Positions 1 through 31,263 of a DNA stretch of 38,148 bases are shown piece by piece. The translations under genes and the position numbers were made by a program. The stretch comes from Macrostomum lignano (lineage: Eukaryota), in NCBI GenBank assembly GCA_002269645.1, contig NIVC01000191.1:1-38148 (forward strand), read 5' to 3'. A model generated the notes under the pieces. That model ran no database searches. It was not told the DNA's origin and saw nothing but the letters and a program-made list of their open reading frames with translations. Numbering within the stretch: the stretch's first letter is position 1; each line of letters opens with the position of its first letter.

Positions 1-1692
1 TTGATTTGGGGTTCCTTGGCGCAATTTGGGATCCTGGCGCCAAATTTAGCTTCCGGCGCCAATTCGAGCTTTCCCGCGCCAATTTGAGCTTTCCAGCGCT
101 AGTTTGAGCTTTCCAGGGCTAGTTTGAGCTTCCTAGGGCTGGTTTGGCCTTCTTGAGTTGATTTGGGGTTCCTGGCGCCAAATTTAGCTTCGGCGCCAAT
201 TCGAGCTTTCCCGCGCCAATTTGAGCTTTCCAGCGCTAGTTTGAGCTTTCCAGGGCTAGTTTGAGCTTCCTAGGGCTGGTTTGGGCCTTCTTGAGTTGAT
301 TTGGGGGCGCCAATTTGGGGATCCTGGCGCCAAATTTAGCTTCCGGCGCCAATTCGAGCTTTCCCGCGCCAATTTGAGCTTTCCAGCGCTAGTTTGAGCT
401 TTCCAGGGCTAGTTTGAGCTTCCTAGGGCTGGTTTGGGCCTTCTTGAGTTGATTTGGGGTTCCTGGCGCCAATTTGGGGATCCTGGCGCCAAATTTAGCT
501 TCCGGCGCCAATTCGAGCTTTCCGCGCCAATTTGAGCTTTCCAGCGCTAGTTTGAGCTTTCCAGGGCTAGTTTGAGCTTCCTAGGCTGGTTTGGGCCTTC
601 TTGAGTTGATTTGGGTTCCTGGCGCCAATTTGGGGATCCTGCGCCAAATTTAGCTTCCGGCGCCAATTCGAGCTTTCCCGCGCCAATTTGAGCTTTCCAG
701 CGCTAGTTTGAGCTTTCCAGGGCTAGTTTGAGCTTCCTAGGGCTGGTTTGGGCCTTCTTGAGTTGATTTGGGGTTCCTGGCGCCAAATTTAGCTTCCGGC
801 GCCAATTCGAGCTTTCCCGCGCCAATTTGAGCTTTCCAGCGCTAGTTTGAGCTTTCCAGGGCTAGTTTGAGCTTCCTAGGGCTGGTTTGGGCCTTCTTGA
901 GTTGATTTGGGGTTCCTGGCGCCAATTTGGGGATCCTGGCGCCAAATTTAGCTTCCGGCGCCAATTCGAGCTTTCCCGCGCCAATTTGAGCTTTCCAGCG
1001 CTAGTTTGAGCTTTCCAGGGCTAGTTTGAGCTTCCTAGGGCTGGTTTGGGCCTTCTTGAGTTGATTTGGGGTTCCTGGCGCCAATTTGGGGATCCTGGCG
1101 CCAAATTTAGCTTCCGGCGCCAATTCGAGCTTTCCCGCGCCAATTTGAGCTTTCCAGCGCTAGTTTGAGCTTTCCAGGGCTAGTTTGAGCTTCCTAGGGC
1201 TGGTTTGGGCCTTCTTGAGTTGATTTGGGGTTCCTGGCGCCAAATTTTTAGCTTCCGGCGCCAATTCGAGCTTTCCCGCGCCAATTTGAGCTTTCCAGCG
1301 CTAGTTTGAGCTTTCCAGGGCTAGTTTGAGCTTCCTAGGGCTGGTTTGGGCCTTCTTGAGTTGATTTGGGGTTCCTGGCGCCAATTTGGGGATCCTGGCG
1401 CCAAATTTAGCTTCCGGCGCCAATTCGAGCTTTCCGCGCCAATTTGAGCTTTCCAGCGCTAGTTTGAGCTTTCCAGGGCTAGTTTGAGCTTCCTAGGGCT
1501 GGTTTGGGCCTTCTTGAGTTGATTTGGGGTTCCTGGCGCCAATTTGGGGATCCTGGCGCCAAATTTAGCTTCCGGCGCCAATTCGAGCTTTCCCGCGCCA
1601 ATTTGAGCTTTCCAGCGCTAGTTTGAGCTTTCCAGGGCTAGTTTGAGCTTCCTAGGGCTGGTTTGGGCCTTCTTGAGTTGATTTGGGGTTCC
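1..1692. repeat. Satellite array, 159-bp higher-order unit (139-bp variant) built of eight diverged ~20-bp monomers; runs off the left edge
   Basis: Unit starts at 897 and 1056 (159 bp); 758 to 897 is 139 bp and lacks one TGGCGCCAATTTGGGGATCC monomer. About 11 units; scattered single-base indels. A degenerate monomer follows at about 1708-1732. Confidence 0.97.
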
Positions 1693-4527
1693 AAGCGTCA
1701 CAAGCGATGATTTAGGGATCGTTGCGCTAGTTATTACACTTGGCTTAGACCACCGGAAATTTATCTGTAGTATAACAAATGTAATAATTTATTGATAAAA
1801 AAAACTGATGCGATCGGTGGGTTCTGTTTTGGAGAAAAAAATACGTTTATTTATTGTATTTGCATTTTATTTTACTAAAACACTTAATATGCCTATCTTA
1901 TGTGAACAAACTAACAGCCGCAAATCTAAAACAGATTTTTCTCGCGCTGCGTCATTAGTTCTCCTAGTGTTTCTTTGTTTACCATAGCTGATGCGTTACA
2001 TCGGCAATAATTTTTTCTTCTAGCTATCATAAAAGCTATGGCTGATGTGTGTGTAGCCACGTATTCGCTAATCGCATAGCTTTTTTGTAATATATTAATT
2101 ATTGTGTAAATATTTGTGTAAATTGTGACGTGTAGTTTGTAATATATGTAATTTTTTGTCATACATCATTGTGTAAATTGTGACGTGTAGTTTGTGTAAA
2201 TATTGATACAATAGTAGTATGTGATGAAACTGACTTGCGAATGACCTGTCGACCTGATTCCTGGCACTTTTTGTGCTGAAATTGAGACGAGAAGGCCTTT
2301 CAAATCTAGATATATATTTGCATGAATTTAGTTATACAACTAGAGCATTATGGACATTCATTCAAGCATACAAACAAACCTTAGAGATTTAGTATATTTA
2401 GATTGTGTAATAATATAATATAGACCTTCAAGTTTGTAGGCAGTGCATAGAGCAAGGGCCAATAACAAAAAATAATATGGTGATCCTGGCTACTTCAAAT
2501 GAATACCTTCTAGAGATTTGAGGGCTTATTTGTGATGAATTAACTGATGAATCTGTGACAGTGACACAGCAACTGTGACCAGAGTATTAAGAATTTTTTA
2601 AACTTAAGCATCTTAGATATGCTTGTCATATGTCAGTGACAGTAGATCTCATTTGTTGCTAGACAGCAGGTTGGTTGAAGTACTACTTCTTAAATAGCTA
2701 GGTAACAGCATTGCTCTTAGGCTACAGTCCCACTTTGTATTTTTCATTGCACACCTTACACTTAAATAATCTTTTTCCTATATGCACCTTGGAGTCAAGA
2801 GTGGAATATATAGTGAGTAGGGCCTATGTCAGGTGGCTCATTCCAGCCAGATAAGATAGACATATTTGGAAAATAGTAAAAAGTCAATATTTTGCTCACC
2901 ATTGCCTTGCTAGCTAATTTTTCTGCCAAATGTTCTTTATGTATAATATAAGCCTATACTAGCATACAATCTAAAAATAAAGGCAATTGTCATTTGTCCA
3001 GTTACTGGATTATGACCATGCTTTCTTATTCATCTAGTTAATACTGGACAAATAGACATTTTGTTATTTGTCCAATTAAATTAATAATGCTAAAAAATCT
3101 ATTTCATAGAAACTACAAGGATAAATATTCCTAGACTTTAAAGACTTCTTATTTGTATCTTGATTATTAGTTTATTATGTTGTTATACTAGTGTGTCTTA
3201 TATACAAAATTATGCCAAATTGAATACATTGCTTTGCTAACAGTATATAAGAAAATATTAATTAATATACAAGAAAAGGTCTTAAAAATTTAGAATATTC
3301 ATCATAAAACAAACAGATACTTGTGTTAGCAATTTAAGCAGACAAATAGCAAAAAGGCTATTTGTCCAGTCATTGGACAAATAACAAATGCCAAAAATGA
3401 ATGGTAAAATGTTGGATTAGTATAATATCAGTTGGCAAAAAGCTATTTTTATAAAAAATTGGACATTTTTTTAAGCAAAAGACATCATTAACTTTGTGTA
3501 CCTTTTGAAAACAAATAAAAAGCTTTGGAAGATTGAAACAAACTATAGATAAAATTATAGTATTTGCATAATTAGATATAAACATTAATGGCCATATAAT
3601 CTATTAAATTTTTAATCTATTGGTAATTCAAAGTTAGTGAATTGACAGAAAAAAGTTAAAACCATAATGTTATGACCATAAGGCTGCCTATTCTTTTGTA
3701 CCTTTGTTGCCTTTAAATAAGTTTAAATATTCTAATAAAAAAGTATGATTTCTTTAGATGTTCTTAGTCAAATTAAAAAACAGAATATCAAAAATGATAA
3801 ATGTTATTTAAGACTTTTATCTATTAGTTTCTATATGTTTCTATATTGTTATCAAGCCTAAGAAGAACTTTTTCAGTGCATGATTCTGTGACTATAAATA
3901 TGTAAATATAATATTCATATAGAATTCTTTTTGTTAGGATAAATAATATATATTTATATATTATAATTTATTGGAATATTCCAAATAAAATAAAACTGAT
4001 AAAAACTTTGTGGGCATTTGTGTTGTGGCTCATTAAACTGCAACTATTAAAACAAAAAATGTATACATCTAAAATTTATAAATTAAAATCAAAGAGCCAC
4101 TATATGCAGGTAGGCCTACCCTTTTTCATAGACATAAGGACCCAGAAAAGACTTGTAAGAAAATACAACAATCAAGAATACAAGATGAAGTGGAAAATTT
4201 AGAAAACATATTCCAAAGCATCCCAATTACACCAAATAATAATTTAAGCTGCTTATTATATACTTATAAACACAACTCAATGCAATATGGCTATGGATAA
4301 CAAATTATAGACTATAAATCTGCTAGATTTTAATCAACTTTAATCAAATCAGCTGATGCTCCAAGCCAGCCACTGCCTGAGCTGCAATGCCTGAGCAGGT
4401 TGCCTTGCAGGTGGCTGAGCAGATGGCTAAGCACCTGCTCTAAAAAGACACTGATATAGATAAACACCTTTTGAGCTTAGCATATGATGTAATATACAAT
4501 TCAGAATGATCCTCACGAATTTCAGCA

Positions 4528-7318
4528 ATGATTTCGTCAAGAAAACTAAATGCGAAATCGAGAAAAAGACAATCTGAAGTAGTACTGATGACTGGCCAAC
4601 GCGGAAGGCCAAGGATATTGCGAACGTCTAATGCGCCTAATGCATTGGAAAGTACTACATCGATTGCCACGGCTTCCTCGTGTTCCACAGTCACTGGCGG
4701 CAGTCTTTCACAAGATCTGGGTGCAGGAAACCATGACTCTATGCCTGAACAGATTAGTAATAAGTTTGAACAGCCGCCTAAATTCACGGAATGGGAAGAC
4801 TACACGGCCATTGTGGAAAGTTACACTGCCGGTTATAAACAGTCATTCGAGTTAAAATGCTGTGTTCGTTGCGACATGCAGCCTGGAGTTTTCCGATGCG
4901 TTCATTGTCAGTACGATGTCTGCAGTGATTGTAAAAAGATAACGCATGGAAATTTTGCTGCTCACAAGTTCCTCCAGTGGAATGTAAGTTGTTTTAAAAT
5001 CTAAATTGCAATTTCTAAGGATATTAGTTTACTGTGAAGAAAACAATGACGCCTATTTGGCAGTATAACGCTGTATTAAATTTGACGTGAAACAAAAGTA
5101 TTTAGAATGCTAATAGCCTTAGTACGGAATAATATTTTTATAACACCGCATACAAAATTTAACCCTTTTTCCTAGGCTCAATCGCTAATGTTTGAAGACA
5201 TTCAAGAAGAAGAGCCTGTCTCTCTATTCTGCTGTAGCGAATCAAGCTTGTCTTCTGAGTTTACAACATCATCCGAAATTCAGATTATTGACATCAACGG
5301 AATTGTTTGCGCCAGAATTTATACGTGCCAATCCTGTGATAAAGTTGATGCCATGCTAGCAAAAGGATACTTTCCTGGAAGCGAGTCACGCGTTGGCGAA
5401 TTGTTAACATTTTTTTCAATTAGCTTTCTATCAACTCTTGACTCCTTGTGCTTTGACGGTCAACTGCCACTGTCTCGTGCAATTACCTGTCTTTTCAAAG
5501 GCTCCGTCGTAGGACAAGGTCGCTGGAACCCTGGTTTAGCCGATCGAGTGTATCAGAGATTGCAGCGTAATGGAGTCCTACTGCGGTTTCGAGAGTTGCA
5601 GAGGTGTTCAGCAAGCTGGCCTGCTAGTTGTCTTTTGTGTCCTGACCAAAATTCAAGTCGGAAGTCTGTAGTTTGTGCTGATGCTCTATTTGGATGGCGA
5701 AGACTACAAAGTATGGGTTCGAAGCAACGTCTAGTGCCAGATTCTGAACGCTCATTGCCGTCACCGCTTATTCATGTAGAACCAGCAACTGTACCGCCTC
5801 CTACGACACAAGTGTCTGCAGAAGGCTGCACTAACTGGAAGGCTGGAACAGAAAAACCCGTGATCAGGGCCAGCAAGCACGATGTCAACGGTTTCTTTGG
5901 CTTATTTTGCCGGCATAACAGGCTTCTGACAGGTTGCAACATTATTACAGCTGGTGAGGGCCTGTGCTATCCAGAACAGACTCTTCGTCATTACCTAATG
6001 ACACAGCCCGTCTCAAAGGATCTCATTTTTATCTATGATGTTGGTGAGTTGATTTTTATCGTGTTTCTATCATGCTGCACTTATTTACACTATACACTTA
6101 TAGTGTGTGCTTACTTATGCTTGTGCTTACTTATGTACGTGCATGCGTACTGCGACACGAAGCTCAATTATTTATTCATTTAAAAACTTTTTCCTAAAAT
6201 CAGGTTGTCGCATTTCCAATCGTGTCAAGTCCATGGTGTCAGCATCTGGTGTACAGCTTAACAGTGTCACGTGCGCTGTGAACGCCTTTCATGTGCTGGG
6301 CCACGAGAGACAATGCCAACTAAAGTACTCCGTGCGGGTAACTCCTGGAGCGGGTCTTTGCGACGGGGAGAATACGGAGCGCGCTTGGTCTGCACTACGA
6401 CCGTTTGGTAAAAGCTTAAAGTACATGCGGTCCGATCGCAGAAGTGCTTGTATGTCTTACATTTTGCATTGCTTCAATGCTAATCAGTTGTTGTACGCCT
6501 CCAATTGGTTTTCTGCTCGATTAAAACTAATAACTCGCACAGCCGCGTCTTGTTCAGCTGAAATGGAGCAATTGCTTCTACAAGCTGGCGATTTGATGCG
6601 GAACAACAAATTAACTATTCCTGCCGGAATCTCTGAGGTAGCCATTTTAAATCTTGCTCAACAATGGCATGCAGAAGCCATAAATCCCAATAGCGACTCT
6701 CCATTGAGCAGGGAACCTTACGCAAAGCTTAAGGCACTTGCTTTGGAACGATTCTATTGGATCCGTCAGAGTGGCTGCTCAGATGGACAAAAAGAAAATC
6801 GAGCATGTCTACGCAAGGTTGCGGCTTTAAATGCAGACATTCGAATGGCCGCCCGCTCGCTTCCGCCAGGCCTTCGCGTGCCCACTATGATTCAGCTTCG
6901 CGACTTCCAGTCAGACTTCTACTTCGGTCTTTCGATCGATGTGTCTGAGAGGTTCAAGCGACGGGTGGTTGACTTGTATCACAAGCTGAATCGTCTAGCG
7001 GAGGAAAAGATCATTATTGTGCAAGAGTGGCGTGACGTTCAAATTAAACTTGAACAGCACTGTGAAACACTCCATCATCAACCTGGATTGCCAGCCCAGT
7101 TTCGATGCCTCTTTCAGACTATTTTAAAGCAACTTCAAGCTCTTCGCTTTGATCACATTGACGCAAGCATTGAAGCTGCTGCTGCTGATGCGCAGCATCC
7201 AAACGACGCTGGTACCAACGTAAATCAGCCAGATGACGTTGAAGCCCCGAGTCATTCAGACGTTGAATCAAGTCGTGAGCAGTCTGAGTCAGATGAAGAA
7301 TGGATTGATAGTATTTAA
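4528..7318 (+). CDS. CxC cysteine-cluster + KDZ (Kyakuja-Dileera-Zisupton) DDE transposase, three exons, 812 aa predicted
   Basis: Exons 4528-4983, 5176-6043, 6204-7318 (2439 nt, in frame; donors GTAAGT and GTGAGT, acceptors CCTAG and ATCAG). N-terminal CVRC..RCVHCQYDVCSDCKKITH..AHKFLQWN cluster. KDZ-type motifs CADALFGWRR, FCRH, GEGLCY, YDVGC (formed across intron 2), FHVLGH..CQ, GAGLCDGENTERAWS. Confidence 0.9.
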
Positions 7319-7481
7319 TTCCGAAACTCGATTACTTGAAACTGTTATCCATAGGATAATCATATTTCGGATGTAAACTAGCTTGTTTACATGAAATTCT
7401 AAACCAGTTTATAAACGTATACCGATTTCTCTTAGAAATTTACTGTAAAGTTTACAGCCTACCAAAGTAAGCAGTATTTCA

Positions 7482-7773
7482 GCTTTCAAAAAGCTGGCCG
7501 CTTTGCATTTCTTGCTGTGGCTTCCCGCTCTTAGTGGCGGGATTGATCCTTAGTTCAATGCTGCAAAAGACCGCTGTGCACTGTTTACTGTGCTGTGGAA
7601 TTTGTTTTGCTCTGCAAAGTGAACTATGGATTAACCCCCTGAACGGTGTTCGGCCTCTTCGTGGCTCAGGGGATCCACGATTCACTTTTAGAATCGGCTA
7701 ACTGAGCACCATTTTTTCTTGTTCATTTTTCTTTTATACTTCTGTTAACAATTTTAGATATTTGCTTCACTGA
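7482..7773 (+). repeat. 292-bp direct repeat, copy 1 (163 bp after the transposase stop)
   Basis: GCTTTCAAAAAGCTGGCCG...GATATTTGCTTCACTGA matches 11462-11753 (offset 3980); no differences found by eye. Confidence 0.97.
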
Positions 7774-8451
7774 TTGAAATTTATAACTACGAGCAACTTT
7801 CTTGAATGTGTTTTATTCTCTCGTTTGTATTACTTAATATTTCATGCATTTATATGCAGTCGCCTGTCGTTGCAGCGAGAGGCGCATATGCGTCTTACTT
7901 TTGTCCCTTTTCGTTGTACTACACTTTGACACTCACTGCAATTTGTCAGTTCTCTTATGTTAGCCTGCGTTTAGACGCCCGCTATGCCAATAGTATATTT
8001 GCATACTGCTTCAAAGATAGCGCGAAAGTATAATAAAAGTGGAACTAGTAATCGTGATATACACATTTTTGTCTTTTACTTTTGTTACGTGTTAACCATA
8101 AGCAATAGCAGTGACCCATCCCGCCATGCACTCATTATCCCATTTATAGCAGCACTTTAGGCTTGGCTGGGGAGATTGAAAATGTAACTGCCCACACTAA
8201 CTAATGGCACCCTGCTTGGCCTGTAGCCTTATTGACTCGGACTCGAGGGTTTCAGTTGAGAGGAAAGGATGTTCATGTTGGAAGATAGACCTGGTTCCGA
8301 TCAGAGGATAGGAGATTCAGATGTGAGATTCAGAATTTTTTATACTCTAAAGCATTTCCTCTCCGTCATTGTCTTAGAATACAAAAATTAAGACTTAATT
8401 TGCCTAACCTCCCTGGAAGCAGTATAATAATAAGCCCACAACGTTTTCCCG

Positions 8452-9069
8452 ATGCTCTTGAATGTCACCCGCGGGACAATGTCTCACATGGTGCAGGTTC
8501 ATACGCAGATTTCCTGTTTGATCTGCAATGCTTGGACAGGACGCGCATCTGGTTTCAAGGTACATTGCAATCGAAAGCACCCTGATGCCACTGAAGAGCA
8601 AATTGATGCCACAATCCGCCTTTTTGGACTTTTAAAGGCAAAGAAGCGAACCGAATCGGGTTACCTCTATCAGTGTCCTGTTTGCAGTGTTATCACTTCG
8701 AATTTACCAAGCCATGTTAGGGTAAAACATGGAAAGCAATCTAAGACAAATGGAAATTCGCAATCTACCTATAACTTAGACGAGGCTAAAGAAAACGCTG
8801 AAGTTTTAATTTCTAAGCTGCAATCACTAGCCGCCAGGAACCCCTCCGAAAAGTGTGCCGATTCACAGCTCTCCGGTCCAAGTGTTTTACGTTCAAACAT
8901 TTTCAATTGCCCTGATAGCCATTGTACATGCCCCTGCCACAGTTGTAGTGTAACTACGTTAGACAATGATTTCAATGGCTTTTTTAATCCAGCTTCTCCC
9001 AGCGTTTCGTTGCAACAAAATGCAAATCCTACAATTTCGAATTCCGTTTCACTACTCGATTTGCTTTAA
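8452..9069 (+). CDS. Double C2H2 zinc-finger protein (205 aa ORF)
   Basis: CLIC..GFKVHCNRKH and CPVCSVITSNLPSHVRVKH; extra CPDSHCTCPCHSC cluster; ATG start and TAA stop. No suitable donor found linking it to the next exon. Confidence 0.7.
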   Translation: MLLNVTRGTMSHMVQVHTQISCLICNAWTGRASGFKVHCNRKHPDATEEQIDATIRLFGLLKAKKRTESGYLYQCPVCSVITSNLPSHVRVKHGKQSKTNGNSQSTYNLDEAKENAEVLISKLQSLAARNPSEKCADSQLSGPSVLRSNIFNCPDSHCTCPCHSCSVTTLDNDFNGFFNPASPSVSLQQNANPTISNSVSLLDLL

Positions 9070-9431
9070 AACTTCAGTGTGACTGGCAACCTAATGCTAC
9101 TATGCAGAAATTCGGGACTGTAATGCGTTATCAAGTCCGTTGTATCGCCCAACCTTTCAAATAAACATTTGATTTGATCTGTTCAGCTGCCTTTTATTAT
9201 TGTCCTGAGACTACGAGCGAGCGGAACATGCCTTCTTTGCTTTCAGTCTGACAGTCTTTAAGAGTGCATTGTAAAGTACCTATTACCAAGATGCCTAGTT
9301 CATTCATCTTTCACCGTAGTTAAAGGTTTCATTTTGATTTTTCCTCATTTTCAGAAAGTTTGCGCGACACGTTTTATCGAGAACTAAATTTTACTCTAAA
9401 CGTTTACGTTGAAAACTTGAATCAATTCAAT

Positions 9432-11393
9432 ATGGACCCTGACCAGTTTATTTGCCCGATGTGTGACTATTCCACCAATCGGTCCGCCACCCTCCTTCGA
9501 CACGCTCGAAGCAAGCATACAGCAAACTACGATCGAGTCGAAGCCTACATTCTCTACAAACGTTGGCATGGCAAAAGAGATTTAAAGCTTTGCCAGCTGT
9601 GCAGCTCATTTGCCGCCTCTAATATGAGACAACACATGCGGCTGTGCCATTTCGGCGAAGCATTTGTTGTCGGCCGTGCAGCCGTAGCTGATGCGAGGGC
9701 AAGGGCATATGACAGAATTGAGGGCCTGCGGTTGTTGGCCTTTTACGGCATCCGGCCTCAACTAAATCTTAATCCAGCCTTGCCGCTTGAAAGCCTGCCG
9801 GAATCTGCCGCCGCTATAACAATGGACGCGGACTTAGCTACCGACGCTGAAATGGCGACCTCCAATGAGGTGTGTTAAACTAAAATTTGTGTCCATGGTT
9901 TTTTGTTGTTAAAACGCTGCGGCCTGTAACCTTGAAAGCATCAGGTCGCGGGTCAGGTCAGGTCGCAACTTTTCTTAAAAAGTTGAATGTTTGGTAAATT
10001 TGAGAAGATGAAAGTGAAAAATGAATAAATAAAAGCTTTTAGATACTTTGCTCAAAAGGAAATATTAGGGATTAACAACAAGGGGTGGGGTCTTTTATGC
10101 TGGCCCATGGTTTATGGTGTAGAGCAATTATCTTACCATCAGCTGGGTTGCATGTATGTTTAATGAAAATAACAAAGGGTTACGTTCATCTTTAATTGCA
10201 TGTTGTAACCATTATGATGTACTTTTTTCTTCACTGTCAGGTTCCCCTTAGCGTTCGGCTCCAAAGAGGAGAAGCCAATAAAGATGGCCTGTCCAATGAT
10301 CCGCCTTTCGAGCCGACTGTGACTTCGCCTGAGGACTCAAATAGCCACGCTGCTGCGGTTGCCCCTCCTGCAATGGCAGCTAATCGCGAGCTTCTGGTCC
10401 CGGAGTCTGCCGCTGCTGCAACTATAGACGTCGCCTTATCTACCGACGCTGTACCGGCGACCTCCAATGAAGTAAGTTGGTCAAACTAAATGAAGTCCAC
10501 AGTTTATTGTGTGAAACAGTGTTCTTAGGAACAATTTTGTTGCATGTTTATTCAATGCAAAGATTAAAGCGTTGGGGTTAATCTGCATTTGTATGCCGTT
10601 ACCACTATGAATCATTTGTCCTCTTCATTTTCTTCACTGTCAGGTTCCCCTTAGCGTTCGGCTCCAAAGAGGAGAAGCCAATAAAGATGGCCTGTCCAAT
10701 GATCCGCCTTTCGAGCCGACTGTGACTTCGCCTGAGGACTCAAATAGCCACGCTGCTGCGGTTGCCCCTCCTGCAATGGCAGCTAATCGCGAGCGTCTAG
10801 TCCCGGACACTATCACAACTCCGGACGGAGCATGCACGCCGCTCCTTCACGTGACGCCTCACGGCCGAGCTAGCCGTGGGAGTCCAGAGCGATCCCTGCC
10901 GACCGAAATGGCGTCTATGAGGCAACTCACTATGGCCGATGTGGTTCGACAGACAATGATTTCTACCGGCAACGTCGTGGTTCAGGCCGGTAGCGTCGAC
11001 GCAGAGGGTCTGGGGGCATTTGCCCGTACGGACCTCCCAAAAGGCACTGTCGTCTGTACTTACGGTGGAGAATTAATCCAAGGACAAAAAGCACGCCTCG
11101 CCCGGGAGGAAGATATTGTAAAGCAAGGGAAGCCATGCTGCTTCTTGTTTTTCTTTTCCTGGCGAGATCAAGCTTATTGCATCGACGCAACCAACACTTT
11201 CCAGTACGTCGGTCGGTACATTAACCATAGCCGGCGAAGAAATAACTTGAAGCCGATTGTTGCTGATGTAAACAATAAACCGCATCTGGTCTTCCAAGCC
11301 ATTCGAGACATTGCTCGAGGCGAGGAGCTACTCTACGATTATGGAGAAAGGCGCTCGGATGTGCTTCGACTGCATCCGTGGCTTAAAGACTGA
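9432..11393 (+). CDS. SETD8-like: Double C2H2 zinc finger fused to a PR-Set7/SETD8 (KMT5A)-like SET domain; three exons, 472 aa from ATG 9432
   Basis: Exons 9432-9869 (acceptor at 9354/9355, frame open upstream), 10241-10471 and 10644-11393, both junctions phase 0. Fingers CPMC..HARSKH and CQLC..SNMRQHMRLCH. SET motifs EGLGAFA, YGGELI, CFLFFF..YCIDAT, GRYINHS, PHLVFQAIRDIARGEELLYDYG, and a C-terminal HPWLKD matching the SETD8 family end. Confidence 0.88.
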
Positions 11394-11461
11394 AAGGCTA
11401 AGTTTATTCTCTGAAACCATCAGCCCCCGTTGCATGGGGAGTTCGCTATAAGATTTTATCG

Positions 11462-22396: not shown

Positions 22397-25300
22397 AGAG
22401 TGTGTCTGTTTTTCTGTCCGTCTGTCTGTCTGTCTGTGTCTGTCAGAGTGTCTGTCCGTCTTTCTGTCTGTCTGTCTGTCTGTCTGTCAAAGTGTCTGTC
22501 TGTCAGAGTGTCTGTCTGTCAGAGTGTCCGTCTGTCTGTCTGTCCGTCTGTCTGTCTCTCTGTGTGTCCGTCTGAATCTGAATCTACGATTCCTGTATAT
22601 CCCATACATTCCACAATTACTTTTAGAATGGACACCTGCCCTCAAGGCTGAATACCAGGCTCTTACGCAGGACGAGAAAAACGCTCTTAGGCAGAGGGCT
22701 AAAGATCGTCCGAGAGATTTTAAAAGCAGCATTCTGGTCGACTTGAAACGAGCTCAAAAATCTTTCTGCGTCGTTATTCCTCCATCCATACCAACAGATA
22801 TGCCCGAATGTTACGTATCTGATGGAGTATCTTCCCGAGTTCAAGAGGAATTAACTGCAGCGGTGAAACAGCTTTCTGATATCATCAAGAAAGGAGAGGA
22901 ATATTATCGAGAAGAAAAAATCGCCTCTCAAGCCCGAATGGAAGCTACGACAGAAGCATCAGTTCGAGCTGAAGCTACCGGACCTTCCAACGCTTTTCGT
23001 GATGTGAAGAAGCTGAGACTGTCAATCCAGGAGAAAGCAACGACTGCTTTCAAGAGAGCTGGAAACAGAGGCCCGATTCCATGGAAGCAAATGGAGAGTG
23101 ACAAGCGAAACAAAACCAGATTTGCACGCGGAAGATTTTCTCTCGATTTCAAGTCACCCCATCATTTAAACAGGGCGGAATGTGTTCAGTTGGTTGAAAA
23201 GTTGGAAAATACGGATCTGGTATTTGTCAATTACCAACATTCTGATCTTATTGAAAGTGCAGGGCATTCGAGCGCCGCTACACCTGCCACGGCCGCTGCA
23301 ACTGCTACACCTGCCACGGCCGCTGCAACTGCTACACCTGCCACGGCCGCTGCAACTGCTACACCTGCCACGGCCGCTGCAACTGCAACACCTGCCACGG
23401 CTACTGCAACACCAGCCACGAGTGCTGAAGTGAACATCCCGGCAGACAAACCTGATGAGTTTGATAACTACGAGCTTGGACCTGGAATCAGTGCTTATCG
23501 AGAATTTTTTCACATGGAAAACAGCAGTGCAACAGTGCAAGCGCAGCCGCAGGGAGCTGCTATTGTACTGACTAACGCCTGCGTCTCAAGTGTTAACAGT
23601 AATCAAACAGGTATGTCTCATTCAGCTATAGAGACGAGAGCCAATCCGACTACTATCAGTTTATTTGGCCGCTCGGCTGCTTTTCGCTATAGTTAAGCAT
23701 GCATCTATTCGAATTAAGAGCCAAAAAACTGTCTGTTTTAAACTTAACTGATGTTATACTCAGTAAAGCAATCCTCAGTCTCTTTGCAAGACTGGCCGCT
23801 TTGCAGAAAATGCTGTGGCAGAAGATCTGGTTCACTGCTGTGACTTTGCCCACTTTGCAAATCAATTCTGTATACTTTGCTGGGGTAATTATTGTCACTT
23901 TGCATACATCCAGATCCCCACTCCTGCGTTGTGATGACCTCTGCGTGGTGCAGGAGAGGCAACAACCCTGTTCACAAAAACACGGTTGGCTAACAATCAC
24001 AGTTAGTATATAGCTAGTTAATTAAATCCCAGATCTCCCCGATTTCAGATCTCAGATTTCATATATCAGATCTCAGATCCCAGATTTCAGATCTCAGATC
24101 CCAGTCTCAGATTTCAGATCCCAGATCCCGGGATTCTAAACTTTTAAATATACAAAATACAACAGTCATTACCTATATTGTGCATATATTCTTAATGTCT
24201 TGTTTTCTCATGAAAATACCTGTGTATTAGAACTCACACGACTCCAACTCCCTCTTCTCTTCTCTGTCTCCTCTTTCTTTCTACTGACTCCCTCCTCTAT
24301 CGTGTATCATCTCTCTCCCATCTCCCAATGCACCCCAGCTCTCACTTCTCTCCCATTTCTTTTCCCTATTCACCCTATAGGTCACTTCTCTCCCATTTTT
24401 CCCTATTCACCCTATCTGTCACTTCTTCCATTTCTCCCATATTTAGTATATAAAAATATAAATTTCGAAAGGATTAGAATTTTATATAATAGAATTTCTG
24501 TAATCATTTGCAGCAATGGCAAAAAGGAATAAAAAGAGGGCCCCAAAAAGGGGCCCTGTTGACTGGGCCGCCGAGTCGGAGGCTGCGGCGGAGGCAGCTC
24601 CGGCGGCGGCGGAGACAGCTCCGGAGGCAGCTCCGGAGGCAGCTCCGGAGGCAGCTCCGGAGGCAGCTCCGGCGGCGGCTCCGGCGGAGGCAGCGCCGGC
24701 AGCTCCGGCGGCGGCTCCGGCGGCTCCGGCGGCGGCTCCGGCGGCGGCTCCGGCGGCGGCTCCGGCTCCGGCGGAGGCGGAGGCAGCACCGGCGGAGGCA
24801 GCACCGGCGGAGGCGGCTGCCAGACGGCGGGCGGGCCGCCGCTGGGCCCGCGTCCGCAAACGAGAGACATTAGTACGTGCATTTGCTGCCTAAATCATTT
24901 CTATATATATCTTTGCTATCTAGATCTCAGATTCCAGATTTCAGGTTCCAGATCCCAGATCTCAGATTCCAGATTTCAGGTTCCAGATCTCAGATTCCAG
25001 ACACAGTCTCAAGTTAGAATAAGCTTTACTGAGCTTTCAGATTGATGGTCATGCACTAGGACATTACATTACACAGAATTAAATTCAGCAAGCTTATTTG
25101 TGTAAATATTAATTTATTTCCAGATGCAAACCGTCGCCCGCCTGCAGCTGCTCCAAGCCCAGCTGCTGGGCCAGCTGGCTGGGTAAGATATTTTTCAAAT
25201 ATTGAATGCTAAAATGTATACTCCTAAATATGCAGTCTAATTTCTTTCATTTACGATTTAAATCGTAACTAGATCGGCTTCGTCTCGGCCCATCAACACA

Positions 25301-28411: not shown

Positions 28412-28717
28412 ATTACATAGCCATCCACTTTTCTCTTTCCCACCGTTTCTAGTGCTCCCAAAGCACACAAATTTTTCCTATACACAAGCAATATACTGAA
28501 CACAGACCTTTAAATCCAGGAGGTTCACCCTGAGTATCTGAGTGACCTGCGAGACAACTAGGAAGAGTAGGCTACTAAAATTAGTATGAGGAGGACATGT
28601 GCACTATGGTTTCTAGACATACACTAGCATCATGTTTTAAGTGACGCAATTCATCATTATGGTTTCAAGATGGTGCGAAAAATGGTTTTTTTCACTCAAC
28701 TCTGGTTTCTTTTCCAG

Positions 28718-28888
28718 ATGGATCAGGATCAGGATCAAGTGCCACCGCCGCCGGCGCCACCACCGCCGGCGCCACCGCCACCACCACCGGCGCCACCGCC
28801 ACCACCACCGGCGCCACCGCCACCACCGCCGCCGCTGGCTCAGCGCCGCCGCATTCGGCGCCTCCGCAGCAGCGGCCTGCGGCTTTAA
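28718..28888 (+). CDS. Possible short proline-rich exon or ORF (MDQDQDQV-polyP/A-LAQRRRIRRLR)
   Basis: TTTCCAG acceptor directly followed by ATG; GC-rich island in AT-rich DNA; could be only a CCA/CCG repeat. Confidence 0.3.
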   Translation: MDQDQDQVPPPPAPPPPAPPPPPPAPPPPPPAPPPPPPPLAQRRRIRRLRSSGLRL

Positions 28889-30584: not shown

Positions 30585-31263
30585 GCTAAAATGAGTGCCT
30601 GCGGTGCTAAAATGAGTGCCTGTGGCGCTAAAATGAGTGCCTGCAGCGCTAAAATGAGTGCCTGCAGCGCTAAAATGAGTGCCTGCGGTGCTAAAATGAG
30701 TGCCTGCGGCGCTAAAATGAGTGCCTGCGGTGCTAAAATGAGTGCCTGTGGCGCTAAAATGAGTGCCTGCAGCGCTAAAATGAGTGCCTGCGGCGCTAAA
30801 ATGAGTGCCTGCAGCGCTAAAATGAGTGCCTGCAGCGCTAAAATGAGTGCCTGCGGTGCTAAAATGAGTGCCTGTGGCGCTAAAATGAGTGCCTGTGGCG
30901 CTAAAATGAGTGCCTGCGGTGCTAAAATGAGTGCCTGTGGCGCTAAAATGAGTGCCTGTGGCGCTAAAATGAGTGCCTGCGGTGCTAAAATGAGTGCCTG
31001 TGGCGCTAAAATGAGTGTCTGCGGCGCTAAAATGAGTGCCTGCGGTGCTAAAATGAGTGCCTGTGGCGCTAAAATGAGTGCCTGCAGCGCTAAAATGAGT
31101 GCCTGCAGCGCTAAAATGAGTGCCTGCGGTGCTAAAATGAGTGACTGCGGCGCTAAAATGAGTGCCTGTGGTGCTAAAATGAGTGCCTGCGGCGCTAAAA
31201 TGAGTGCCTGCGGCGCTAAAATGAGTGCCTGTGGTGCTAAAATGAGTGCCTGCGGCGCTAAAA
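30585..31263. repeat. 21-bp minisatellite GCTAAAATGAGTGCCTG(C/T)(G/A)G(C/T), 32 full units
   Basis: First GCTAAAA at 30585, last at 31257 (672 bp = 32 x 21). Confidence 0.97.

Follow-up and report, generated by a model that had tools for sequence, protein, structure and literature searches.

The finger-SET gene and its product

The 38,148-nt stretch of the flatworm Macrostomum lignano genome analyzed here (assembly GCA_002269645.1, contig NIVC01000191.1, positions 1 to 38,148 of the forward strand; below, "the window" means this whole stretch) contains a gene for a protein that combines two C2H2-like zinc fingers with a SET domain resembling that of KMT5A (also known as SET8, SETD8, or PR-Set7). 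This finger-SET gene has a transposase gene of the KDZ (Kyakuja-Dileera-Zisupton) superfamily as a neighbor. It begins with an ATG at 9432, ends with a stop codon at 11391-11393, and consists of three exons with every junction in phase 0. The elements of the gene and of its product are as follows.

9432-9869, plus strand: exon 1 (146 codons), with the ATG, the two-finger module, a helix, and the start of a disordered linker; GT donor
9453-9518, plus strand: finger 1, C8-x2-C11-x12-H24-x4-H29, canonical C2H2 spacing
9591-9650, plus strand: finger 2, C54-x2-C57-x10-H68-x4-H73, shortened C2H2-like
10241-10471, plus strand: cassette exon 2 (77 codons, phase 0), with AG acceptor and GT donor
10644-11393, plus strand: exon 3, with AG acceptor, the remaining linker, the N-flanking helix, the SET domain, the C-flank HPWLKD, and the stop codon
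11007-11345, plus strand: SET domain (Pfam SET, E=1e-19)

Inclusion of exon 2 gives a product of 472 amino acids (aa), and its omission a product of 395 aa. The exon is a chimeric tandem duplicate: positions 10225-10404 match 10628-10807, the start of exon 3, at 99%, and its second part (10400-10478) matches 9798-9876, the end of exon 1, at 80%. Its effect on the protein is a longer disordered linker and nothing more. In GenBank, the finger-SET protein of contig NIVC01000191.1 (P0041) is annotated at 9357-11393 as a 5'-partial product of 497 aa that includes exon 2. The exon is also kept in P0040 and P0042 (486 aa each) and left out of the P0001 model (409 aa), although the DNA of the P0001 locus is identical to that of the window. 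All four proteins agree with the exon model made from the sequence. A polypyrimidine-CAG stretch at 9337-9354, 3 nt after which the annotated partial coding sequence begins (at 9357), is a possible candidate for a spliced-leader trans-splice acceptor.

The M. lignano gene models in GenBank derive from a genome-guided RNA-seq assembly, in which transcriptional units were split at experimentally mapped trans-splice and poly(A) sites (PMC5730564). According to these RNA-seq-based models (P0041, P0040, and P0001), the finger-SET gene is transcribed and spliced, and its finger exon is joined to its SET exon. The original prediction, an earlier reading of the same DNA made from the sequence, depended on this joining; the finger exon and the SET exon that it described are both present, but its count of two exons has to be revised, since a third in-frame exon (10241-10471) was found.

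The protein has two fingers only, separated by 25 residues. The middle spacing of finger 2 is x10 here and x9 in the paralogues. In Pfam comparisons, every match of finger 1 falls slightly under the curated cut-off (23.9 bits vs 27; at best 26.8 vs 27 for zf-H2C2_5, and 21.3 vs 25.2 for zf-C2H2). A profile of four paralogous finger modules (those of two finger-SET proteins and of two finger-only open reading frames, or ORFs, described below) matches the fingers of CTCF with E=1.3e-6, and all eight zinc ligands are invariant over the four modules. The AlphaFold2 model, which was calculated for the 395-aa isoform and built on 30 sequences, contains two beta-beta-alpha units with a helix between them, the predicted local distance difference test (pLDDT) score being 81-89 for finger 1 and ~70-75 for finger 2. 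Another helix follows the fingers, and the linker residues 105-222 after it have a pLDDT of <50; altogether, a disordered linker of roughly 120-200 residues separates the finger module from the SET domain. By spacing and predicted fold, finger 1 is a classical C2H2 finger and finger 2 a shortened variant. The earlier claim of two C2H2 fingers was therefore right for finger 1, whose spacing is canonical, and has to be qualified for the shortened, C2H2-like finger 2, all Pfam finger matches being under the cut-offs.

Sequence comparison of the SET domain with PDB entries (phmmer) returned human KMT5A/SETD8 for each of the 14 best matches (E=2.6e-27 to 1e-22), followed by Cryptosporidium SET8 (E=2.5e-17) and, at E=1e-13 or weaker, by EZH2, EHMT, and MLL. 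In the AlphaFold2 model the pLDDT exceeds 90 over SET residues 270-395 of the 395-aa isoform, and a Foldseek search with this model placed human SET8, including its complexes with the H4 peptide and with the nucleosome, in all top 16 positions. The target-normalized template modeling (TM) scores against human SET8 are 0.80-0.88, and the tightest root-mean-square deviations are 1.5-2.1 A over ~150 residues. The superposition on SET8 structures containing the H4 peptide or the nucleosome takes in the N-flanking helix and the full fold up to and including the C-flank. The structure prediction and the alignment with SETD8 both place the domain with SET8, at an identity of 33-38% to human SET8 and of 35-46% to canonical KMT5A SET domains.

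Multiple alignment of the finger-SET proteins with human SET8 and the canonical KMT5A of Pocillopora, Hydra, Bulinus, and Trichinella revealed invariant columns at GxG, the Y245 equivalent, R-E, C-x-D-A-T, G-R-x-x-N-H-S, E-L-x-Y-D-Y-G-x-R, and W-L. In the 472-aa model, the motifs are located at 363-367 (YGGEL), 402-406 (CIDAT), 417-419 (NHS), 451-457 (ELLYDYG), and 467-472 (HPWLKD). The residues for S-adenosylmethionine binding and catalysis are all in place (345-349 for GxG, then 363, 417-418, 454, and 456, which correspond to GxG, Y245, N298-H299, Y334, and Y336 in human SET8 numbering), and the equivalents of E259, C270, H347, and W349 are kept in P0041. The original prediction had called the domain SETD8-like, had listed NHS, ELLYDY, the Tyr of YGGEL, CIDAT, and HPWL as intact, and had taken the Tyr of ELLYDY to fit a monomethyltransferase. 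These statements agree with our results: KMT5A is the best match by both the PDB sequence search and Foldseek, each of the motifs was located, and by homology the first Tyr of ELLYDYG (Tyr-454) aligns with Y334 of SET8, the Phe/Tyr switch. The PDB entries 3F9W-Z represent the Y334F and Y245F variants of SET8 with H4K20 in different methylation states. The enzyme is likely to be active and to monomethylate lysine, the latter because a Tyr occupies the Phe/Tyr-switch position.

The PCNA-interacting protein (PIP) degron had been reported as missing from the exons. This observation is borne out, as neither Q-x-x-[ILMV]-x-x-[FYW][FYW] nor [ILMV][ST][DE][FYW][FYW] was found by regular-expression scans of the protein and of the six frames of 9300-11450; a scan by regular expressions and alignment did not find a PIP degron in P0052, the finger-SET protein of a second KDZ subfamily, either. 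The same kind of scan scored four canonical orthologues as positive or PIP-like. In the canonical KMT5A of Pocillopora, Hydra, Bulinus, and Trichinella, the pattern [ST]-x-[YH]-[FY]-x-[VL]-R-[RK]-S occurs ~35 residues before the SET domain; QTEVSEYFPVRRSGRK is an example of the canonical degron, and the stretch of the finger-SET protein aligned with it is VTPHGRASRGSPER. One further candidate, GLRLLAFYGIRP (residues 126-137 of P0041), was rejected, as it fits a very relaxed PIP pattern only, has neither the Q nor the TD nor a basic residue at +4, and is not present in P0052.

A repeated unit with a KDZ transposase gene

The finger-SET gene is situated 2 kb downstream of the transposase gene and on the same strand. 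The main features around it are listed below.

24-1692, no strand assigned: satellite on the left side of the unit, made up of 20-nt subunits GCGCCAATTTGAGCTTTCCA that form a higher-order unit of 159 bp
4528-7318, plus strand: transposase gene of the KDZ type (three exons, 812-aa model); its domains are B-box (B-box-like, zinc), CxC1 (cysteine cluster), and KDZ
8452-9069, plus strand: finger-only ORF, intact, 205 aa, between the transposase gene and the SET gene
13025-13601, plus strand: small spliced gene (P0039) for an acidic protein of 98 aa, within the repeated unit and the transcript cluster

The introns of the transposase gene are at 4984-5175 and 6044-6203. The two halves of the KDZ domain are recognized by Pfam with E=6.8e-8 and 1.2e-18, and CxC1 and the B-box weakly. 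The GenBank product of 4528-7318 is a KDZ-domain protein of 812 aa, and near-identical copies of it are P0033 and P0044-P0048. A model of 830 aa, the length annotated for the copy at locus L001 (P0033), translates through an intron and was discarded; the 812-aa model is preferred because of its GTGAGT/CAG splice sites, the restored YDVGC motif, and the match to the annotated length at the window locus. The two fingers of the finger-only ORF align collinearly with the N-terminal part of the SET protein (27% identity, E=4e-5 by BLASTP). No annotated protein turned up for this ORF (8452-9069). The GenBank gene numbering has a gap of one between the transposase and the SET gene at each locus (g1/g3, g2/g4, g6/g8), which hints at a transcript-defined gene without a deposited protein at the place of the ORF. 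The small gene P0039 has no Pfam match and is annotated downstream of the SET gene in every copy examined, with a product of 84 aa in L012 and L013.

Under the naming rule of the M. lignano annotation, transcripts that cluster at 95% identity receive one name prefix (PMC5730564). The transposase gene, the SET gene, and the gene for the 98-aa protein have a common prefix, Mlig004599 (g6/g8) at the window locus and Mlig022522 (g1/g3) at another; because of this rule, the common prefix implies that one transcriptional unit covers all three. In UniProt, the transposase, the SET protein, and ORFs 12068-12400 and 12812-13204 are combined into one predicted protein of 1347 aa (P0034). We do not accept it as a true SET-transposase fusion, as the prediction also runs through the downstream ORFs and the transcript-based annotation has separate genes.

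Six loci were compared, namely the window (to which L010 is identical over 1-21393), L001, L009, L011, L013, and L015. The transposase gene, the SET gene, and the small downstream gene are found in the same order, strand, and spacing at all six, and the transposase ORF is intact in every copy. The 2,037-bp SET gene is 100% identical to that of the window in four of the five further loci and 99.9% identical in the fifth. In accession lists, transposases at least 90% identical to that of the window are annotated on at least 8 contigs, and the finger-SET protein occurs on ~9 contigs (four for P0040, three for P0041, and one each for P0042 and P0001); the small gene, the SET gene, and the transposase gene have successive accession numbers. 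Homology to the window extends in L001 from position 1 to ~17.3 kb, and in L015 from 3187 (the fetched edge) to 24021 with an identity of 97-99.7%. Simple duplication of one locus would not account for the differences among the copies: L009 (467-3797) and L015 contain, at window position ~3190, a 3.3-kb nested insertion that is flanked by duplicated ACTAG(T) and is not present in the window, and L013 diverges to the left of window position 2569.

A second KDZ subfamily is represented by locus L007 on contig NIVC01001431.1, the transposase of which (P0035) is 48% identical to that of the window. The SET gene of this locus (P0052, 300 aa) lies 0.7 kb downstream of the transposase gene in the same orientation. 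Over ~80 residues, the two fingers of P0052 and those of the window protein share 40% identity (E=5e-12); its SET domain is 35% identical (E=4e-21), the C-terminus being ELLYDYGER...FPWLNS. The locus also contains a finger-only ORF (15185-16057) with 31% identity to that of the window (E=1e-9), placed after the SET gene and not before it, and 6.4 kb of the window-type satellite (~78% identity) upstream of the transposase gene. The SET catalytic motifs are invariant in both finger-SET proteins and in the canonical KMT5A sequences. Because the motifs and zinc ligands are retained at a protein identity of 35-48%, the gene appears to be functional and under purifying selection.

This conservation bears on the suggestion that the gene is a functionless passenger, i.e., a host gene fragment that was captured by the element and has no role. 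Capture of host fragments by DNA transposons is known, and the near-identical copies of the window-type unit carry no information on selection. On the other hand, the full ORF, the splice sites, the catalytic residues, and the eight zinc ligands have been kept between the two subfamilies, which are 35-48% identical, and the gene is transcribed and spliced according to the RNA-seq-based models. We therefore consider a passenger highly unlikely.

As judged by the sequences, the fusion of the fingers and the SET domain is a property of the element lineage, because the same architecture is present in the second KDZ subfamily. The original prediction was different: a canonical host SETD8 had its regulatory N-terminus swapped for zinc fingers and thereby became a sequence-targeted writer of H4K20me1 that escapes degradation in S phase. 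The fingers, the SET8-like domain, and the lack of a PIP degron would all fit this history. However, the gene is within a multi-copy KDZ unit, its SET domain shares only 33-38% of residues with human SET8 and ~35-46% with canonical KMT5A and other outside proteins, and the same architecture stands beside the 48%-identical transposase of the second subfamily, all of which makes a modified host SETD8 very improbable. Being multi-copy and transposase-linked, the gene does not correspond to a single-copy host orthologue of KMT5A. Similarly, the idea of an enzyme freed from cell-cycle control does not apply to a part of a multi-copy KDZ unit that is not a modified host SETD8 locus; the missing degron is best read as ancestral to the element-borne lineage, not as the escape of a host enzyme from S-phase destruction.

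HMMER was run exhaustively against 1.84 billion representative proteins and yielded 2,829 matches at E<=0.001. Among the matches listed, the finger region or the linker is reached only by P0001, P0052 (in two stretches), and the 78%-identical fragment P0049. P0001, the near-identical match of the query, and P0052 are M. lignano proteins. The other listed matches cover the C-terminal part (mostly residues 260-395, some from 140) with 29-49% identity, canonical KMT5A/set-1 from corals, Hydra, a snail, and Trichinella being the best named ones from outside. At the loci of the closest non-flatworm SET matches (L002-L006, from Logan, ENA, and TARA contigs) and at that of Schistosoma mattheei (L017), no KDZ neighbor was found, and these neighborhoods are uninformative on the linkage of KDZ and SET genes. 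Arrays of SET8-like domains were observed in Holothuria leucospilota (P0051, 8 matched stretches) and Phyllopteryx taeniolatus (P0050, 5 stretches in 4152 aa), and a protein from a Logan contig (P0013) combines a Ulp1 protease with a SET domain; these three may be further mobile or expanding SET8-like genes.

Comparison of the copies delimits the unit on one side. A sharp left junction is common to L001 (position 360) and L007 (position 616), 245 bp before the satellite; outside it the two loci are unrelated, and inside it they are 92% identical over these 245 bp. The unit has a discrete common left boundary at two different genomic places. At the other side, the homology of the copies stops at window position 24021 (L015 position 20087) after ...GCTAGTTAA, from where the window goes on with TTAAATCCCAGATC and L015 with ATCTAGGGGGCGACCC. 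This stop, at a TTAA, reflects the right end of the unit or else a TTAA-targeted nested insertion in one copy.

The unit is very probably a giant KDZ transposon of M. lignano with the finger-SET gene as an accessory gene. Giant KDZ elements measure from 10 to >30 kb, have accessory genes, and contain nested insertions common to copies (PMC12477816). On the whole, the gene is probably best explained as an expressed accessory gene of this giant KDZ transposon family, encoding a probable finger-targeted lysine monomethyltransferase. The comparison of copies covers a single M. lignano assembly, and the linkage and the copies there are the basis of the transposon identity. Several observations weigh against this explanation. 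Scans of window positions 1-16000 for terminal inverted repeats gave only short pairs at chance level, and neither such repeats nor a target-site duplication was found; the sequence GGCTGTGGAAAAGCAGACGCC of the putative left end occurs at L001:360 and L007:616 and nowhere else, and no inverted match to it was found in the window when up to 3 mismatches were allowed; and the right end was not located by the comparison of copies. The linkage does not extend to a third KDZ lineage (L008, 33% identical), in which SET and finger genes are both missing within 10 kb. As regards expression, short-read models over near-identical copies cannot assign it to particular copies, and as regards the enzyme, the equivalents of C270 and H347 are A and F, respectively, in P0052 of the second subfamily. 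Finally, in the assembly of the neopolyploid M. lignano genome, duplicated blocks (>=95% identity) account for 180-312 Mb (PMC5730564).

Because the genome is neopolyploid and the assembly redundant, the copy number is weak evidence of transposition, and an ordinary or domesticated host gene cluster could have become multi-copy in this way, the SET protein then being a host chromatin regulator. The duplicated blocks and the missing terminal repeats and target-site duplication speak for such a cluster, as does the fact that the copies have >24 kb in common in the same order. It is nevertheless rather improbable. The ~9 contigs of the accession lists exceed the expectation from ploidy; the nested 3.3-kb insertion with its ACTAG(T) duplication is present in some copies, and one copy has a different left neighborhood; the 48%-identical subfamily has the same trio of genes and the same left junction in unrelated flanking DNA; the transposase ORF is intact in every copy; and units of >24 kb are normal for KDZ elements (PMC12477816).

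Possible role of the enzyme and related systems

The preferred substrate is plausibly H4K20 or another SET8-type target. For H4K20 itself the assignment is tentative, with the balance tipping slightly against it. In the structure of SET8 with H4, residues C270 and H347 presumably line or contact the pocket for His18 of H4, and because their equivalents are changed in the second subfamily, specificity for H4K20 is insecure for the family as a whole.

Alternatively, the accessory enzyme may act on a non-histone protein, such as its own transposase, PCNA, or a host factor of silencing or repair, and the fingers may be an adaptor for protein or RNA. SET8 itself methylates PCNA and p53; the fingers are atypical, being only two, 25 residues apart, and the second of them shortened; and the equivalents of the His18-pocket residues vary in the second subfamily. 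Nothing points to such a substrate directly, however, and the SET8 fold including its flanks superposes on the structures with the H4 peptide and the nucleosome, and finger 1 matches the DNA-binding fingers of CTCF. We regard this alternative as improbable.

Returning to the accessory gene of a KDZ transposon, the following mechanism can be proposed. The fingers would bring the SET enzyme to a DNA motif or a partner that is also recognized by the finger-only paralogue. On grounds of economy, the likeliest target of the fingers would be the sequences of the element itself, i.e., the satellite or subterminal repeats. That the fingers direct the enzyme to the element's own DNA, with the finger-only paralogue sharing the target, is conceivable, and we would sooner doubt than accept it. 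The element would write a mark on its own chromatin or at sites of excision or integration. The benefit might be anti-silencing, self-regulation or self-limitation, or break repair of the 53BP1 type, as speculated by analogy with SET8 and SETMAR. The degron may be lacking because the gene never was a cell-cycle-regulated host gene. The complete scheme, in which the element has its own sequence-targeted writer acting on its repeats or ends, with the finger-only paralogue as a partner or competitor, and in this way controls its own histone state or repair, seems on balance unlikely.

Of the known proteins, KMT5A is the most similar to the product of the finger-SET gene. It is the best match by sequence and by fold, with the same GxG, Y245 equivalent, NHS, ELxYDYG, and the Tyr equivalent to Y334, and likewise has a C-terminal SET domain that ends with HPWLK and is not followed by a post-SET zinc-binding cysteine cluster. 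In contrast to KMT5A, the finger-SET protein lacks the PIP degron, has the two-finger module as its N-terminus, and is encoded by a multi-copy, transposase-linked gene.

Transposon-borne SET genes are already known in other superfamilies, and a SET8-type enzyme in a KDZ element would be the new part. SET accessory genes of HarbingerS and MuDR elements of Phytophthora are cited in PMC12730594, proto-Helentron elements have a Clr4-like SET accessory gene (PMC4067079), and in PAG2 of the Plavaka elements of a red alga a SET domain is fused to a DNA methylase (bioRxiv 10.1101/2025.02.11.637652). As in these four cases, the element described here carries its own SET-domain protein beside the transposase. 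It differs from them in belonging to the KDZ superfamily, in its animal host, and in its dedicated two-finger module, which is also encoded as a separate gene; compared with the Clr4-like gene of proto-Helentron and the methylase fusion of Plavaka, it also differs in its SET domain, which is of the SET8-type clade.

KDZ elements of basidiomycete fungi carry genes for TET/JBP dioxygenases (PMC12730594). They resemble the M. lignano unit in the transposase superfamily, the giant size, and the presence of an accessory enzyme that modifies chromatin or DNA, whereas in the flatworm the accessory enzyme is not a DNA-base dioxygenase but a predicted protein lysine methyltransferase, and the fungal KDZ proteins are only 26% identical. 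In the full-text literature covered, which does not include Iyer et al. 2014 (PNAS), we found no KDZ element with a SET gene, no SET8-type transposon gene, and no such element of Macrostomum.

Another comparison is with SETMAR (Metnase), a single host fusion of a SET domain of a different type with a mariner transposase. In both cases a SET domain is tied to a lineage of DNA transposases, and a role at DNA breaks has been proposed; here, unlike in SETMAR, the SET protein and the transposase are encoded by separate genes 2 kb apart in an apparently live element. The SETMAR structure (PDB 3BO5) is a weak match to the SET domain of the window (E=6.5e-6).

In Hydractinia, Hydra, and sea urchin, non-canonical genes of the KMT5A-like kind have undergone large expansions, which are unexplained and were not connected with transposons (PMC10368294). 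Like the gene of the window, the expanded genes are divergent SETD8-type SET genes with non-canonical architectures; the two-finger module, among the matches listed, sets apart P0001 and P0052 of M. lignano and the fragment P0049. Invertebrate "KMT5A-like" gene counts deserve a check for transposon origin, and if the self-targeting writer is real, the hydrozoan and echinoderm expansions could also be transposon-borne.

To our knowledge, chromatin-acting accessory genes of transposons are rare; known examples include VANC of the VANDAL elements, the TET/JBP dioxygenases that fungal KDZ and Plavaka elements carry, and the SET genes of elements from oomycetes and red algae. Such genes are informative on the arms race between transposons and host silencing. 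If the explanation given here is true, it would add an example from an animal, from the KDZ superfamily, and with a SET8-type enzyme, coupled to a finger module that is also encoded alone. Replication licensing, chromatin compaction, and 53BP1-dependent break repair are all connected with H4K20me1, the mark made by SET8. As M. lignano is amenable to RNA interference and transgenesis and has a transcript-based genome annotation, the idea is directly testable in this species. The loci, which now appear as "hypothetical protein" in GenBank or as a 1347-aa "B box-type domain-containing protein" in UniProt, should be annotated as transposon genes.

Repeats and other features of the unit

The satellite at the left side of the unit is also present at 862-7319 in L007, 604-2306 in L001, and 1-2112 in L011, and in both KDZ subfamilies ~2.8 kb separate it from the start of the transposase gene downstream. 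Possible interpretations are an array of subterminal repeats belonging to the element and a favored landing site. Within the unit, a further pair of repeats follows the two large genes.

7479-7773, plus strand: 295-bp repeat, copy 1, downstream of the transposase stop codon
11459-11753, plus strand: 295-bp repeat, copy 2, 66 nt past the SET stop codon

The two copies form a direct repeat with an identity of 99.7% and are found in every copy of the unit; they may have arisen by a recent duplication inside the unit, or may be a 3' processing region common to the two genes.

At 11891-12083 and 12628-12820, repeats of 28-29 nt containing the core GTCCTCAWWTGACCC form two arrays that bracket a GC-rich stretch after the SET gene. 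There are 7 matches to the core, where none are expected by chance, and the arrays are present in all copies of the first subfamily and not in L007. As a candidate binding motif of the fingers, the 15-nt core was rejected, since its absence from the second subfamily (L007) gives no support for a conserved target.

Farther downstream, a ~585-bp tandem repeat, the units of which end in (TATTC)n, extends over 15071-17331 and has more units in L001, L009, and L015. It is followed by a 1-kb purine-only, GA-rich satellite with a GC skew of 0.95 (18972-20029) and by ~2 kb of degenerate (TGTC)n (20608-22574). The GA-rich and (TGTC)n stretches are also present in L009 and L015 and produce the long spurious ORFs listed for this part of the window. 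The stretch 22650-23696, inside the block that the window has in common with L015, encodes the unique C-terminal 348 codons of a long ORF, with a 27-nt coding repeat (ATPATAAAT...) and no significant Pfam match.

Finally, two pieces of the window beyond position 24021 are shared with L007, a 160-bp segment of 83% identity and a 21-nt minisatellite, GCTAAAATGAGTGCCTGCGGC, in ~32 copies. The shared pieces are at 28566-28722 and 30585-31263 of the window and at 17406-17565, 17799-17937, 21822-21981, and 22211-22348 of L007. The unit may be longer than 31 kb, or these pieces may be dispersed repeats.

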